The notes under the pieces: generated by a model
What the model saw: only the letters and a program-made list of their open reading frames with translations
Told to the model about the DNA's origin: nothing
Database searches by the model: none
Assembly: GCA_965202585.1 (NCBI GenBank)
Contig: OZ241833.1
Span: 23,808,001-23,872,000, forward strand
Direction of reading: 5' to 3'
DNA from: Thalia democratica
Lineage: Eukaryota
Length of the DNA: 64,000 bases
Part shown: positions 844 through 15,459 of the stretch, one piece after another
How positions within the stretch are numbered: position 1 is the first letter of the stretch
Layout: every line of letters begins with the position of its first letter
Made by a program: the position numbers and the translations under genes

Positions 844-3800
844 CTGCATGCTGTGATCATGGCCGCTCATGTAAGCCGAAACCCGATATCTTTCTAGTAA
901 GGGTTGCAACCGTTCCTGCAAGCACTTTGTACTTCCGTGCATGCCGCCAGAGTAGACTGGGTAGTGACCGGCTACTATCAGATAATCTGAACTGTTTGCC
1001 AAAAGTTAAAAAAAGTTGTTTATTTTTTAAAATAATACCACAAATTAAGTGAGTAAAAGTTATGAGAAGCATTGTTGTTATTGTTTATTGAACGAAAAAA
1101 AGCGCTCAAAAAGTTTGGTCTAAGGACCTAATGTACGAAAAAGTCTTTCGGTTATCGAGTCATACATCAGGATGCAGTTTAACGTTATTATTAAAGCTTA
1201 ATAGTTGTTATCTTGCATACAATTAACAATTTTTAGAAATATTTTTAGTTAATTTTTATAAAAAACATAAACAAATGGTATATTAACTTTTAGTTTGCTT
1301 ATTATATTATGAGTCTTATAACGGACCTAAAATAAAAATAATGTAATCATTTTCGCTGTATAGCTTTTAAAGTTAGCCATTGTAATTGATTTTAAAAGCA
1401 TACGCTTATTTTAGAAATAATTTTAATATTTATAATTTAAACAATTTCTTACTATAAACTAAGCGATTATATGCAAAATAGATAATTTATACAAACAAGG
1501 TTTCTTACAGTTAACTACAAAAGTTTTAAATTTACTATTTAAGAGCAAAGTTTAATATTAAAAAGTTTGTTGTACAATAATTTTTAGTTTAAATACCAGT
1601 TGGAAATTTTAAATAAAAATAATTTTGAAAAAGTTCTGAACAGTGTAAAAGTTTCATGTAAACAAATCGTTAACATGTGCGTGTTTTCTATTTTTAAATT
1701 ACTTTTTAATTTTATTTCAACACATGTTGTTGTTTAAGTATTGCTGACTTTATTTTAAAATAACAAGTGAAAACCTTCAACATAACATTAAGCTTTTGGC
1801 TTTGAATAAAACAACTGTAGTTTTAAATTTAAATAAAATTTAAAGAGATAAACTTTTAATCGAAGATACTAGGCGAAATAAAATATAACATTATCGCATA
1901 AGTGTGTGTGTGTACAAAAACAAACATCTTGTTTTCATCTTAATTTCACGGAAAGCGAAATGTCACATGAGCAGGCGCGCGCTTGAATGAAAACAGCGTT
2001 TCGTGTGTAAAAAAATCAAAATAAAAACACTTGGAGCAGGTACGAGATTGATATCACGTGCAGCAGTGCAACCCGCACGTCATTAAGAAAGTCCAAGTGG
2101 AAGAAAGTTCTTCAAAGTTGGACTTTGGATCAGAAAAGGAATTTGTTTTTGTCTGCCGCGCTCGCAAACATGAGTTCTAGCGGTTTTGCAGCGACATGTT
2201 TTTCCTAAGGAAATTCACTTTTTTGCACGCCCGAATGACTTTGTGATTTATGTCTGCAAACGAGGAGATCGAAGTCCAACAAACAAGCTGCTAAAAAATC
2301 AACGCAGCGAAATCATTTGAACTCAATACACACTTTTTTATTGGCCAATAATCATTCAAAGCAAAGTTTGAGGTTATCCAATAGAATCACTTGTTTGTTA
2401 CACAGCTTCAGCTTAATAATATTATGCAAACATATGTCAAATACGTTTTTTTTATCAGATAGTAAAAAAATCATACGGAAGTTTCATAGAATGTGTTTTT
2501 ATTTCTGTTCGAATATGTTGTAAAATAGTTTTTACGTATGCTAAAATAAAAAACAGATGACTTAATTAAATTTCATGCAAAAACAAAGCCATAGAAGAAA
2601 AGTAAATTTCGTAATTTTTATTCATGAATGTACTTTGTAAGCAATTATTATAAAACATGTAGATTTTTGATTAAACCTCGTTAAAACTCATAAAATTTCG
2701 GACTAACTTAGTTTATGACTAGCTGCTTAATTTTTACTTTTTAGAAAATTTGTTTAAATTTTATTCGCTGAAATGATTTTAACAGTATTTATTACAATAA
2801 ATTTTCTTTAGAACTTCAGTTTTAACGTTTATGATAGTTTTATTAAAACGTTGGCAAAAAAGTTGCTCAATACTTTATCTTATAACACTTTAAAGCTTCA
2901 ATTTTTCTAGCTATGTTCAAAGTAATATTTTATTATTAGAACTGCTCAGTTTTTTTTTAATCATTTTTATACAAAATATCCAAGAAAACAATTAAAACAA
3001 AATTTGATTTCTTGGAATTGTATCATTAAAAAACGTTAGTAATTATGAAAATAAAAAAGCTTAAATTTTAAAGAACGGTAAAAGCTAAGCAACTTTTACA
3101 GGTATTTTTAACATTAATAACATATCGCAGTAAACAGTAGTTTATCATCAAAAATAAAAATATTTTATTTTATTGTTTAACATTGCCTTTGAACTTATTG
3201 TCAAACGAAAACACTACTAAGAATAAATAGTTAAAATATAAGTACGCGTTTAAACTCTAGCAACAAACCAACTCGCTTGTACTTAGTTTTTTTTCAATCC
3301 ATTTCCAAATTTCTTCGGCTTCTGTAATATTTTCTGGACCTTGTGGTTTTAACCTGCCATCTAGTGACAATTTCCCACACAATTGAACTGTGTCTATCAT
3401 GACAATTTCTATTGTCAAGCCGTTATTACCGGGTAACTGTCCAGATAAGACATAGTTGGTTTTCGGAAAGTTCCACCGTCTAAAAATCGTATTACGCATT
3501 TGTTTTAAATTAAATTTATTTAATTTTTTAAAAAGAGATACATAATATTTTTTTATATGTCTAAAAATTAAAATAATAAATTCGTTTGTTTAATTTTATA
3601 GAAATTTAAGTTTTTATAGAAGTTAATTTATACAACGTTGATTATATACTTGTTTTGGATAAAACAGCTAGTTGCTTATTCAATACGTAATACAAAGTTA
3701 AATACCAAAAACCTCTTAAAACTTTGTTTTATAAACTAAATGCATGATTTTGAATTGTTGAAAGTTAAGTTGCACTTTAATTCTGTTGAATTTAATTTGA

Positions 3801-6800
3801 TATTTAAATGTTATACACACGTTAAAATTTTACGTTTAAAAACAAAATTTTGCTTTTAATTTAAATACTATGGTTAAGCAGTGATTTTCAAGTCCTTTTA
3901 CTGAAGTTAGATGTAACAAATTTACAAAGCTAAATTTAGCCGAAAGTATCATTTTTTAATTTAAATCTTGACGAATTACTTATTGAGTTTGTCAATTAAG
4001 CTTTTTTAATTTAATTAATTATGTGCATACATTTAGTAAAACAAAACTATACTTTACAAACACTTACTGTGAAACTTGGCTGTACTGCATTTCAGCCGAA
4101 ATGTTTCCTCTGTAGTCGTCATTGCCCGCCACAATGTACCATGGTACTTGCAACCCGGGCAACCCGAACGGGTCTTCAAATGTGTCCTTACAATACAAAA
4201 AAAAATACTAGTTGAGTAAATTTAAAAAAATTTTTACTTGAATACTTAGTATTAACAAAGCATAGGGTAGACCAGTGGCAAATCCTTAGTACAGCTTGAA
4301 TAGAAGTATTAATTGTGTAGAAATTACAAAAGAAAACTTAATATTAGAACATGGACTGACGATAGCTTGAAAAAACTTATATAACTATTATAAGTGTTAA
4401 ATATAATAATAAATAGTGATAATTTTTAACAAAAAACAAGTTCGTTGAACTGTTATACCAACAATTTTACAGTTACTTTTTTATAACAACTAAAAACGTT
4501 TATCTATGTTAATTAAACAAAACTATTCGAAGGGGTTCTAAAAGAGTAGATATTTATAAAGAAGTTATGTACAAATGTTTCTATAAGAATTATGAATAAA
4601 AAGATATAAGAGTTTAAAATACACAATATGAATAAGTAATTATAACCATACACTTTATGTAAAATGTTAAGGTAAAAAAAAATAAAAGTTCCGGGATCAA
4701 AACTGTTAAATATATTAATTTTTTTTTTGTGCATGATTAATCAATATAAATACAACAGAAATACAGCGCAATAAAAAATATTCAAACATCGCAGTAAATT
4801 AAAGTTTATTTTGACTATCAATATACTCTAGTATTAAAGTAAATTAAAAAATTTCAATTACTTTTTTTAATCCGTAAGTTTGTCATCTCACAAGTTTTTT
4901 TTAGTCAATCATTTATTTTTAAAGTAACCTATTTAATTTCTAGACGACAAAAACAATATTTATTTCAAAGTACAAAAGTATTTGATTAGTAAAACAAACA
5001 TTTAAGCTTTAAAACAACTTCTTCATTGTGCACAAGGTTCATTAGATTTAAATTTATTTTAAAAAGCTTGCAACCTTTTCTATATTCAAACTACATTCAA
5101 ATGTGTTATTTATTATGTTTGCTTCGTTGTTGTAAAATCGATAATCTACTTCTTATTTGGTTAAAAAAATGTTTTGTGAGACTAATGAATTATTAGTTAT
5201 ATTTAAGAGAAGAAAATATAAATGAATAACGGAAATTCAAATACTATTAAACACAAGTAATGCAATGTATTTATACAAAGTTTTTATTGTGTTCGCGTTG
5301 TCAATATTAGTAAGCTTAGCTTAATTTTTTTCGATTTTGATAAAAACATGACTTTGCTATTTAAGTATAATTATAATGAAAAATTTATTCTAAACACTGA
5401 CTATTCAAATTTGCTTTAATATGTTTCAAAAACTGGTAAAAAAGCTGAATAGTTGTTCTGTGAGACTTAAAGAATGTTTACAACAGTATAGGCACAATTT
5501 GAACATTTCTCATTGGTTTGCACAGAGGCAGTGAAGTTTGGTCAAAACCTGAGCATGTGATTTTGTTACTACATAAAATTAAATTGTATTTTACAAAAAC
5601 AGTTTTAATAAACCTCGAGCGATATTACGATTAAAACATTTTACTAAAGTGGTGCAGCTGCTAAAAAGTCATCATTTCTTCAAAGTTTTAATTAAAAGAT
5701 TTCTTAAAACCGAAGTTCATTTTGTAAACAGTATTGTTGAAATATTCTACTTTTTTATTATAGCATTGTGTTATTTGTTGTTGTACTCAAACATCTTGTT
5801 TTGACAATCGTTTATAAATTTGTTACTAATAACTTTAAAAAAAACTATCAAATTTGTTCTAGAGTAGTATTTTTAACAATAATGGCTATTAATCGTGCTT
5901 TAAAACCATGTTTATGTACGTTTTATGAAAACTTAGCAACTGTTTAATACTATTATTTCTTCAAAATGCAAAAATTTTGTTGAACTACGAAAAGTTATAA
6001 CTAAAATTCAAAAAGAAACAACGCATTAATTAATGTGGCTTTGTAGTAAGTTTAGGTAATGATAAACTTTTAATTTTTTTTATGTTTGGTATACATTTTA
6101 GAGGCTAAAACAAATACTTTTGCTTTTAAACTATTTTCATATTTATTAACGTCTTTTCTTTTAAAGCTCTCTAAACTACATGTTATAAAACATATAATAA
6201 ATTAGAACACCATATAATATATCGCTTTTAAAATGTTTTAAACTTAGTGTAGAAATTTGGATTCGTTTTTCATTTTTAATCTTAGAAAACAACTAATTAA
6301 GTTTTATTTTTAATATAATTGAAAGTTCTAGAGTTTTAAAACTTAAAGAAACATTTTAAAATATAAAATTTGATTTGTTTTAGTTTGTGAACATAAACGC
6401 TTCCTTATTAAAACGACTAAAGATTTTACTTAATGACTGTTTCAATATAAACTTTACTTTTTTTTGTATTCATTGGATAATTTAAAGGTTATTGAGCTAA
6501 TTTTTTCAAAACTTTTGAGACTTCTAATAGCCTTTGATAAAATAAAATAACTAACTACTAACGGATAGAATAAAGTAAATTTAACATATCATTCATTTTC
6601 AGTATATTTAACTTATCAAGTTTTTTCTTTTTTTTTAACTCTACTTTTTCTGTATTCTGGTTATTCTAAAAACTAGTTTAACTACTCCTTGAAAAAAAAT
6701 TATCGTCAAAACCACATAGTTTACAGCTAAAATAATACTAAAATTAATAACAAGATGTTTTACTTGTTTTCCAACATAAAAGCTTTAAGATTTAAGTGTA

Positions 6801-7772
6801 CAAGTTTATGTTTAAGCAGCTAAAATTTTAAAGAAGTGTCAAAAACAACTTACAACGAATCTCCTGTCGTTCAAGTCCGTAACTCCTGCCGGTGAGAAAT
6901 TGTCACCGAGGGAGAGAATGAAGCTGGAACCGGCTCGTTGCGAGTAGGCGTCCATTGCGCGTGCCAGCTTCATCTGAGCTTCCGTGTAGAACGGAGGAGT
7001 CGCAACTCCTCCGCAATCCGCGATCACCAAGAACCTCACTCCGTGCCCACCTTTGAACAAATTGTTTTGTTTTCGCAGTGTTTGAAGTTAATAGATTTGC
7101 ACACTTTAAATTTTTTTTATGTTCTTTAAAAACTGAATTTGAATAGTTATTTTTTTAAGTTGATACGTTTTGGTTTAAATACAAAAGTATAATTCAAAAG
7201 TGTATATGTATACATACTTAAAAGTTATTGCGGTTTTTTCTTTGAGTTTTTTTGATATTTAGTTGTTTTGCAATGAAATAAGTCTTAATCTAATGAATCT
7301 GTATAGGAATAAGGCTTCTTAAGTAAACTAGTTGAGCATAATAAATTAAAAAAAACAAAAACTACATTTTTCTTTTTATTTTAAGTATTGATCTTTAATT
7401 GCTGTACTATTAAGAAAAACTAAAGATTCATAAGTAAAACAAAAAAGGACAAACTTTACTATTTCCATTCAAATTATAACATATTTTTCAGTAAAAACTA
7501 CCTTTGTCGGAGATCTTTAACAAAATCTTGTCACCTGTGAGTTTGCCAGTGGAATCTTTTACATTCCCCACTTCTCCTATTTTCAAATCGTCAAACAAAC
7601 CAGGTTTATTTTCAACCTCGGGTATTTTACTAGTGCTTGCATCAGCCTCACTCTTTTTACTGAGACTGATAATCACAATTAACAAAACAAAAACGATTAA
7701 AACTATCAAAGCTTTTTTGTAAATACCTTTTCTATGTGGGTAACTTTTTTCGTAAGGAATCAAAAATTCCAT
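844..7772 (-). CDS. ACP5: ACP5/TRAP-like calcineurin-fold metallophosphoesterase (purple acid phosphatase family) with type II membrane anchor; 3' end incomplete
   Basis: Phase-consistent exons: 7772-7502, 7050-6854, 4186-4068, 3479-3273, 991-844 (314 codons). Translation contains [116 protein letters not shown], collinear with mammalian ACP5. Exon 1 carries the hydrophobic segment [18 protein letters not shown]. The symbol is a family-level match, not proven orthology. Confidence 0.92.
1075..1190 (-). repeat. Copy of the ~120-150 bp hairpin-forming interspersed repeat (SINE-like)
   Basis: Reverse complement reads ctgatgtatgactcgataaccgaaagactttttcgtacattaggtccttagaccaaactttttgagcgctttttttcgttcaataaacaataa, alignable to the copies at 11415, 22983, 23160, 42470 and 43612. 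Confidence 0.8.
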
Positions 7773-15027: not shown

Positions 15028-15459
15028 TTAACTAAATAAAGACTCTTTGTAATCGAATTCCTTTTGTTTGCACAATTCTGATTTCTCCTAAAGTATGGAG
15101 ATAGTCTCCAACTTCACGATATCAAATACACTATTGCATGATGGGTTATTCTAAATCTGGATATGTCATATTTCCTAGCACAATCTTTATCATTAATTAG
15201 ATCTTCTGCAACTGAAAATCTTTTTGCTGCGTTTTTTGTTGCTGTTGTCTTAATTTTAGGTTCTTTTTCAATGAATTTCAAAACACAAGCAGGTAGATGT
15301 TCTTTTATCCTGTTTTTTAAGTGCCTTGAAGTCTGACCGATATAGCTCTTTTCGCAAGAGCAATTAAACTTGTACACTATACAACTTTTGTCTTGGTCTG
15401 GTATCGGGTCCTTCAACTGTATTTTTTTGTTAAGTCTTTTACTTTGCTCTCAAATACAC
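15028..15459 (-). mobile_element. 5'-truncated Penelope-like retroelement fragment (GIY-YIG endonuclease and C-terminus)
   Basis: The ORF 15416-15114 reads KDPIPDQDKSCIVYKFNCSCEKSYIGQTSRHLKNRIKEHLP (VY...YIGQT..L..R..EH GIY-YIG pattern). After a frameshift it continues CNSVFDIVKLETISIL*EKSELCKQKEFDYKESLFS*, so it is decayed. Confidence 0.88.

Follow-up and report, generated by a model that had tools for sequence, protein, structure and literature searches.

A membrane-anchored ACP5-like protein of Thalia democratica without the iron-ligand tyrosine: a candidate pseudo-phosphatase from a tunicate paralogue lineage

In purple acid phosphatases (PAPs), the metals are held by seven invariant ligands distributed over five motifs, DxG, GDxxY, GNH(D/E), VxxH and GHxH (PMC2553084). 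The tyrosine of the second motif, a residue linked to the Fe(III) state, gives these enzymes their charge-transfer band (PMC2553084, PMC2267794), and His92 and His195, in the numbering of the mammalian enzyme TRAP (ACP5), have been proposed to bind the substrate before catalysis (PMC2267794). The question addressed here is what has become of a protein of this family in which that tyrosine is a serine and His92 is an aspartate, and which is encoded on the minus strand at the beginning of a 64,000-nucleotide stretch of the Thalia democratica genome (the window; contig OZ241833.1, G000:C9:23808001-23872000; genome of 802 Mb, 26% GC). An earlier note, made from the letters of the window, had described it as a colourless PAP, repurposed rather than randomly decayed, that could use a different metal pair, catalyse a different reaction, or be a metal- or phosphate-binding pseudoenzyme. 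The results presented here support a repurposed functional protein rather than decay, and they indicate that the window protein is probably no longer a classical PAP. The last of the three options is preferred, and we give about an even chance to the window protein being colourless, anchored in the membrane and able to bind metal, as a pseudo-phosphatase or a binding module.

From the reading frames and the GT-AG sites, a gene of six coding exons was derived, in which all introns are GT-AG and the frame is open over 395 codons, giving a 395-amino-acid product. The earlier note had counted five exons, and the interval that it had assigned to the gene, 4068-7050, spans just E1, intron 2 and E2; the open frame that it described holds over all six exons, with an anchor exon (E0) and an exon outside the window (E5) in the final model. 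E0 (7772-7502, on the minus strand, as are all of the exons) has its start codon at 7772-7770 with an in-frame TAA just 5' of it, and ends at the donor G|gtagtt, joining E1 in phase 1. It encodes a short basic cytosolic tail of about 20 residues with a conserved tyrosine, then a hydrophobic stretch of 17 residues, and then a stalk with a conserved IGEV motif, an arrangement predicted to be a type II signal-anchor. The ectodomain implied in the earlier note is borne out by this anchor exon, and a lumenal or extracellular position predicted for the ACP5-like domain fits the retention of the disulfide cysteines and of the GN(V/I)S glycosylation site of mammalian TRAP.

Both substitutions were read directly from the remaining exons. 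E1 (7050-6854) encodes motif I as IADCGG, in which Asp102 corresponds to mammalian Asp14 and Cys103 stands in place of tryptophan, and motif II as GDNFS, in which Asp140 corresponds to Asp52 and Ser143 (TCA, 6895-6893) replaces the Fe(III) ligand Tyr55. E1 closes at a gtaagt donor, and a 2.7-kb AT-rich intron separates it from E2 (4186-4068), which encodes motif III as AGNDDY, with Asn178 retained at the position of Asn91, Asp179 (GAC, 4120-4118) in place of the second-sphere catalytic His92, and Tyr181 in place of the second histidine of GNHDH. The serine and aspartate codons are those given in the earlier note; TCA is two changes away from a tyrosine codon, in agreement with its estimate of at least two, and GAC is one change from CAC. 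E3 (3479-3273) contains Cys230, the equivalent of the disulfide Cys142 of mammalian TRAP, together with a loop matching the repression loop. E4 (991-844) contains AGHYP (His274, equivalent to His186), GGMHGST (His283, equivalent to His195), Cys288 and GHDH (His309 and His311, equivalent to His221 and His223), and the earlier assignments of ADCGG as motif I and of AGHYP, MHG and GHDH as intact were confirmed. E5 (L003:9834-9589, corresponding to G000:C9:23807589-23807834) was fetched from the same contig, lies 166-411 bases past the first base of the window, and supplies 82 codons including the stop. The change from tyrosine to serine also makes an N-F-S glycosylation sequon (N141-F142-S143, window 6901-6893) with a buried Asn, adjoining the bridging aspartate; the Ciona and Styela proteins have NFC here.

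By sequence, tree and fold, the window protein is an ACP5 homologue with the small (35 kDa type) PAP fold. When E1 alone was compared with solved structures by phmmer, human, pig and rat TRAP were found at E 7e-12, with the serine opposite the Y of GDNFY. Pfam searches on single exons matched only E4 (Metallophos, E 1e-5), the remaining exons being too short. For the homology search, the alignments and the fold, P0001, a full-length environmental sequence 97-98% identical to the window protein, was used as its proxy; it matches ACP5 of fishes, tetrapods and molluscs at E 1e-64 to 1e-75. An AlphaFold2 model of residues 85-395 of P0001, based on a 71-sequence alignment, had a predicted local distance difference test score (pLDDT) of 92.8. 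Pig, human and rat PAP (1ute, 1war, 2bq8, 1qhw) occupied Foldseek ranks 1-8 with template modelling scores (TM) of 0.85-0.92, the best superposition having a root-mean-square deviation (rmsd) of 1.5 Å at 38% identity, and the next distinct structure was GAP50 (3tgh) at rank 9, with TM 0.82. The likeness to mammalian ACP5/TRAP/uteroferrin extends to 40-44% sequence identity over the catalytic domain, to motifs I, IV and V, to Asp52, Asn91, His186, His195, His221 and His223, and to the Cys142-Cys200 pair. The window protein differs in having Tyr55 replaced by Ser, His92 by Asp, the second histidine of GNHDH by Tyr, the Trp of DWGG by Cys and AEHGPT by GMHGST, in a type II anchor and a stalk of about 70 residues instead of a cleaved signal peptide, and in belonging to a separate, tunicate-only clade. 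With six of the seven ligands present, serine in place of the tyrosine of GDxxY, and GNDD instead of GNH(D/E) as motif III, it falls outside the seven-ligand definition of a PAP, and the canonical Fe(III)-tyrosinate chromophore would not be expected to form without the ligand tyrosine.

Could these changes belong to a decaying pseudogene, or reflect an artefact of assembly or annotation? We regard this as very unlikely. In a public run (X4), a single spliced contig of 1205 nt at a depth of 106 has the junctions 7502|7050, 6854|4186 and 4068|3479, with GT..AG ends on the minus strand exactly as predicted, and its loose end at 3273 continues into E4 sequence. Because of these exact junctions and the run-on into E4, this contig is a spliced transcript, and the window gene is transcribed and correctly spliced. 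It shows no differences from the window in E2 and three in E1, whose positions were not placed, a gap that is covered by P0001 and by a contig of the second haplotype (C941). The latter is 94% identical to the window across the first 1.1 kb, which is mostly intron; its E1 DNA and E4 protein are identical to those of the window, and the three amino-acid changes over E1-E5 do not affect Ser143 or Asp179. Four full-length orthologous mRNA contigs were found in marine metatranscriptomes and a Logan assembly, namely P0001, P0151 (78% identical), P0153 (64%) and P0152 (55%). P0001 encodes a protein of the same 395-residue length with the same N-terminus, and differs from the window gene by 10 nonsynonymous differences in 395 codons. 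Both substitutions are present in this environmental mRNA contig (P0001/L014), which was obtained independently of the genome. Since C941, the X4 contig (for E2) and P0001/L014 agree, Ser143 and Asp179 are not an assembly slip.

The ratio of nonsynonymous to synonymous substitution rates (dN/dS, Nei-Gojobori), proposed earlier as a check, was 0.059 against the haplotype contig, 0.075 against P0001 and 0.072 against P0151, synonymous sites being saturated in the deeper pairs; two ascidian orthologues (L021 and L022) likewise differ from each other at a proportion of 0.16 of nonsynonymous (pN) and 0.83 of synonymous (pS) sites. The window gene is therefore under strong purifying selection and does not evolve neutrally. 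Two observations would favour decay. In C941, the equivalent of exon 0 (L018/L004 join; window ~7690) carries one additional base in a T run within the membrane-anchor codons (GTTTTTGTTTTG to GTTTTTGTTTTTG), which would shift the frame of that allele and may be either a homopolymer error, the contig being an unpolished, unplaced one of 33.6 kb, or a real null allele. In addition, the environmental transcript P0157 encodes 300 amino acids, in which E0-E1 are followed by four intron-derived residues (VSCF) and then by E4-E5 out of frame; it is an aberrant splice form without E2 and E3. Against these stand the open frame over six exons, the correctly spliced transcript, the four full-length orthologous mRNAs, the intact orthologues in five ascidian genomes, and the position of the indel in a homopolymer of a small unplaced contig. 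A pseudogene was rejected on the basis of transcription and a dN/dS of 0.06-0.08, and the earlier claim of repurposing rather than random decay is upheld by these results together with the loss of Tyr55 and His92 throughout the tunicate orthologues described below.

The T. democratica genome contains a second ACP5 gene (G000:C8:56609273-56616462, minus strand; L007, L010, L019, L020), in which, in contrast to the window gene, the hallmark motifs are all kept in canonical form (GDWGG, GDNFY, GNHDH, AEHGPT and GHDH). The two genes are 39-56% identical in the exons compared, and two intron positions, after RRF(K/V) and after GHDHxxQ, are common to or adjacent in both. No anchor exon was identified for the canonical paralogue in a search that was not thorough, and of its exons the short one that links GHDHNLQ to DSIPDG was not found. 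Among named sequences, P0001 is closest to proteins of Ciona intestinalis (54%), Styela clava (49%) and Clavelina lepadiformis (49%), publicly annotated as 'tartrate-resistant acid phosphatase type 5-like', and intact six-exon orthologues are also present in two ascidian genome contigs from ENA assemblies, L021 and L022. All members of this clade have a hydrophobic anchor at the N-terminus, and in the three named relatives it is accompanied by a stalk in which an IGE motif is conserved.

In a maximum-likelihood tree of 30 sequences, from which the L021 and L022 orthologues were left out, the eight anchored proteins were split off by a 100/100 branch of length 0.93, and, with the environmental sequences P0208 and P0209 chosen as the outgroup, the clade fell within metazoan ACP5. 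Inside the clade, Styela comes first, followed by Ciona and Clavelina, which are grouped together beside the pelagic species. The accepted order of tunicates is Stolidobranchia, then Phlebobranchia plus Aplousobranchia, then Thaliacea. Because the order in the clade matches the tunicate phylogeny, the paralogue predates the split of the sampled thaliacean and ascidian lineages. The position in the tree, together with occurrence in marine metagenomes, points to a pelagic tunicate. There were no anchored relatives lacking the tyrosine from outside the tunicates among the database matches listed, in which larvaceans and other deuterostomes were not specifically tested, and full-text literature searches (TRAP in Ciona; PAP pseudoenzymes) returned no description of the clade. 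Among environmental sequences from JGI and ENA, an unrelated ACP5-like group (P0259-P0266) has SDWGW, GDNFQ, GNHDY and GHDH, and represents an independent loss of the tyrosine, to glutamine, with His92 kept. Because this group carries GDNFQ with an intact GNHD, loss of the tyrosine has occurred more than once.

The residues that have changed and those that have been kept differ in a consistent manner across the clade. The position of Tyr55 is occupied by Ser in the four pelagic species and Clavelina, by Cys in Ciona, Styela and the fragment P0008, by Leu in L021, by Arg in L022/P0004 and by Lys in P0006; among canonical ACP5 sequences it is Tyr in 63 of the 63 aligned. The position of His92 is Asp, Lys, Leu or Val in the clade and His in 64 of 64 canonical sequences. 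Since both residues are kept in all of the 63 or 64 canonical sequences and are replaced in every clade member, chance can be excluded. Asn91 is retained in the pelagic species and Styela and is Asp in Ciona, Clavelina, L021 and L022 (Asn in 64 of 64 canonical sequences); His195 is retained except for a Gln in Ciona (mostly His in canonical ACP5); and Asp14, an aspartate in canonical ACP5, is retained except for a Gly in L021. Therefore, the earlier statement that the other ligands are intact applies to T. democratica and does not extend to the whole clade. In contrast, Asp52, Asp93, His186, His221, Asp222 and His223 are invariant both in the clade and in canonical ACP5, and the second histidine of GNHDH, mostly His in canonical ACP5, is an invariant tyrosine (Tyr181) in the clade. 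Exactly one extra aspartate is always found at 178/179, as N-D or D-x, and Ser285 and the C-terminal clade-specific motifs QHIK, GVHYFV and YFWTN are invariant. Across the catalytic domain, 29% of columns do not vary in the clade, whereas the positions of Tyr55 and His92, each with four states among nine species, belong to the 28% of columns that vary most. The orthologue in L021, without Asp14 and Tyr55, is otherwise conserved, as the pN and pS values to L022 given above indicate.

This pattern bears on the proposal in the earlier note that Ser and Asp might build a new metal pair. Under such an explanation, Ser143 and Asp179 would be specific adaptive replacements in the pelagic lineage, supporting a metal pair or reaction absent in the ascidian relatives. 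It is favoured by the sharing of DCGG, GDNFS and GNDDY among four pelagic species whose overall identity is only 55-78%, with the fragment P0002 also having DCGG and GDNFS, and by the GNDD of Styela. When orthologues were examined for the GDNFS/GNDD pair, as the earlier note had suggested, the pair was thus recovered in the four pelagic species, whereas the ascidians differ from it, Styela sharing GNDD alone. However, serine is a poor ligand for Fe(III), both positions vary freely in the sister lineages of the orthologous clade, and conservation within a shallow subclade is explicable by inheritance alone. With S/C/L/R/K at one position and D/K/L/V at the other, Ser and Asp are not conserved or specific replacements, and the pattern argues that the Fe(III) site has ceased to be constrained, and not that the metal pair has been redesigned. 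The adaptive explanation is therefore considered improbable.

The preferred explanation, a pseudo-phosphatase or binding module, would proceed as follows. A canonical ACP5 gene would have been duplicated before the sampled thaliacean and ascidian lineages split, with the canonical copy still present in the same genome. In the lineage of the window gene, an anchor would then have been added at the N-terminus, and constraint would have disappeared from the Fe(III) half of the dinuclear site, with the tyrosinate ligand and His92 lost in every member and Asp14 in one. Its product would be a type II membrane protein, with the ACP5/TRAP-fold domain on the lumenal or extracellular side, held on a stalk at the membrane surface. 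The M2-side divalent metal and an anion pocket would be retained and the old active-site groove used for binding, and there would be no phosphomonoester hydrolysis driven by an Fe(III)-hydroxide. Such a protein would be non-purple and redox-inert, with catalysis disabled or strongly impaired. Because Tyr55 and His92 vary freely and one member is without a second M1 ligand, the canonical Fe(III)-M(II) mechanism cannot underlie a function common to the clade; and because the M2-side ligands and the bridging aspartate are invariant, metal binding at the M2 side is probably still needed. The features found, namely the PAP fold, the anchor, the loss of Tyr55 and His92 and the selection, are those of a PAP-fold pseudo-phosphatase or membrane anchor, in which the loss of activity would follow from the residues lost.

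Several points weigh against this explanation. Five to six of the seven metal ligands, and His195 in all but Ciona, have been invariant over a very long time, although their loss would be expected in a pure scaffold. The constant extra carboxylate at 178/179 has the appearance of selection still acting on the electrostatics of the site. QHIK, GVHYFV and YFWTN may line the groove, which would fit a live active site or a binding site equally. Furthermore, some active metallophosphoesterases lack the motif III histidine, such as LpxH with GNRD and YfcE with GNCD.

A rival explanation is that of a protein that is still an enzyme, that is, a colourless membrane-anchored metallophosphoesterase with a different substrate or pH. 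Its centre could be di-divalent (Zn, Mn or Fe(II)) or a mononuclear M2 site, its substrates could be diesters, nucleotides or phosphoproteins, for example, at the cell surface or in the endolysosomal lumen, and the extra aspartate at 178/179 would offset the charge lost with the tyrosinate. We take this to be a substantial alternative, with perhaps one chance in three. Asp52, His186, His221 and His223 are invariant, position 91 is Asn or Asp, and His195 is kept in eight of nine species; the extra aspartate is present without exception, purifying selection is strong, and the predicted fold superposes on those of active PAPs as given above. A 'non-purple TRAcP' without the tyrosine has also been proposed as a probable phosphatase (PMC2553084). 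On the other hand, none of the residues Leu, Arg and Lys at the Tyr55 position can serve as a metal ligand, and a metal would be repelled by Arg and Lys. The intact and constrained L021 orthologue, without Asp14 and Tyr55, has two protein ligands left at M1, the His92 position is free, and His195 is Gln in Ciona. A related and wider proposal is that of a live enzyme or sensor with a new metal site on the ACP5 scaffold, for example an M2-only or di-divalent one with its charge balanced by the obligatory aspartate at 178/179; at the cell surface, it would either turn to a substrate not used by TRAP or bind phosphate-like oxyanions; we hold this proposal tentatively, as possible though on balance doubtful.

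With respect to known systems, GAP50 of Plasmodium and Toxoplasma (3tgh) is the clearest precedent for the PAP fold as a membrane-bound non-enzyme, and the pseudo-phosphatase explanation draws on it by analogy. GAP50 is PAP-like and anchors the glideosome to a membrane, a structural role, and its phosphatase site is considered degenerate; it is attached through a C-terminal anchor and located in the inner membrane complex. The window protein shares with GAP50 the small PAP fold and membrane anchoring, but other residues have been lost in GAP50, and the identity to 3tgh is 23%, compared with the 38% to mammalian TRAP. Because the identity is this low, GAP50 is of independent origin; common descent is not supported, the tunicate clade being nested in animal ACP5. 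The non-purple 'alternative' TRAcP (human NP_060810, now CPPED1; Hadler et al. 2008) is a PAP-related metallophosphoesterase that is conserved across animals and keeps six of seven ligands, the tyrosine alone being replaced, by a histidine, which is a competent ligand as in Ser/Thr phosphatases (PMC2553084). In contrast, the window clade has non-ligand or variable residues at this position (Ser in the window protein and Cys, Leu, Arg or Lys in relatives) and possesses a signal-anchor and disulfide cysteines, whereas CPPED1 is cytosolic, has its relatives among the large PAPs of the plant type and, at only 15% identity to ACP5, does not count as a paralogue of it. The window protein is thus not of the CPPED1 type.

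Other observations were made on the gene and its surroundings. The GC content at third codon positions (GC3) is 0.34 in E0, 0.64 in E1, 0.59 in E2, 0.35 in E3, 0.54 in E4 and 0.90 in E5, in a genome of low GC content, and it ranges from 0.22 to 0.71 in the orthologous mRNAs of related species. Horizontal transfer, considered on account of the GC-rich exons, was rejected since the protein nests among animal ACP5, and it is also opposed by the intron positions common with the canonical paralogue and by the GC3 range of the orthologues. The spread between exons suggests local GC-rich islands, perhaps due to biased gene conversion, and not transfer. An intergenic open reading frame of 100 amino acids at 15114-15416 on the minus strand has a GIY-YIG-like motif (IVYKF...KSYIGQTSRHLKNRIKEH) and probably derives, as a fragment, from a mobile element of the Penelope-like or another GIY-YIG type. 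About 9 kb past the window start, 3' of the phosphatase gene, exons on the minus strand (L003:551-1096) resemble the N-terminal domain found in large lipid transfer proteins of the vitellogenin or apolipophorin type.

The Fe(III)-tyrosinate site with seven ligands has been treated as a defining, invariant feature of PAPs (PMC2553084), and the sampled tunicates hold an exception to it. Within a chordate subphylum, a second ACP5 gene, anchored, expressed and tightly conserved, has been without Tyr55 and His92 since before the divergence of thaliaceans and ascidians, and the label 'tartrate-resistant acid phosphatase type 5-like' under which its products are deposited probably overstates their function. 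The clade represents a second, independent membrane use of the PAP fold after the apicomplexan GAP50. It also provides a natural series of variants, with S/C/L/R/K at Tyr55, D/K/L/V at His92, N/D at Asn91 and D/G at Asp14, which could be used to determine which parts of the PAP site serve metal binding, colour and catalysis. Because one of the orthologues belongs to Ciona, an experimental model, direct functional tests should be possible. If the protein proves to be a live enzyme or sensor, the lineage would be a natural experiment in which a purple acid phosphatase was turned into a different metallohydrolase or a receptor.

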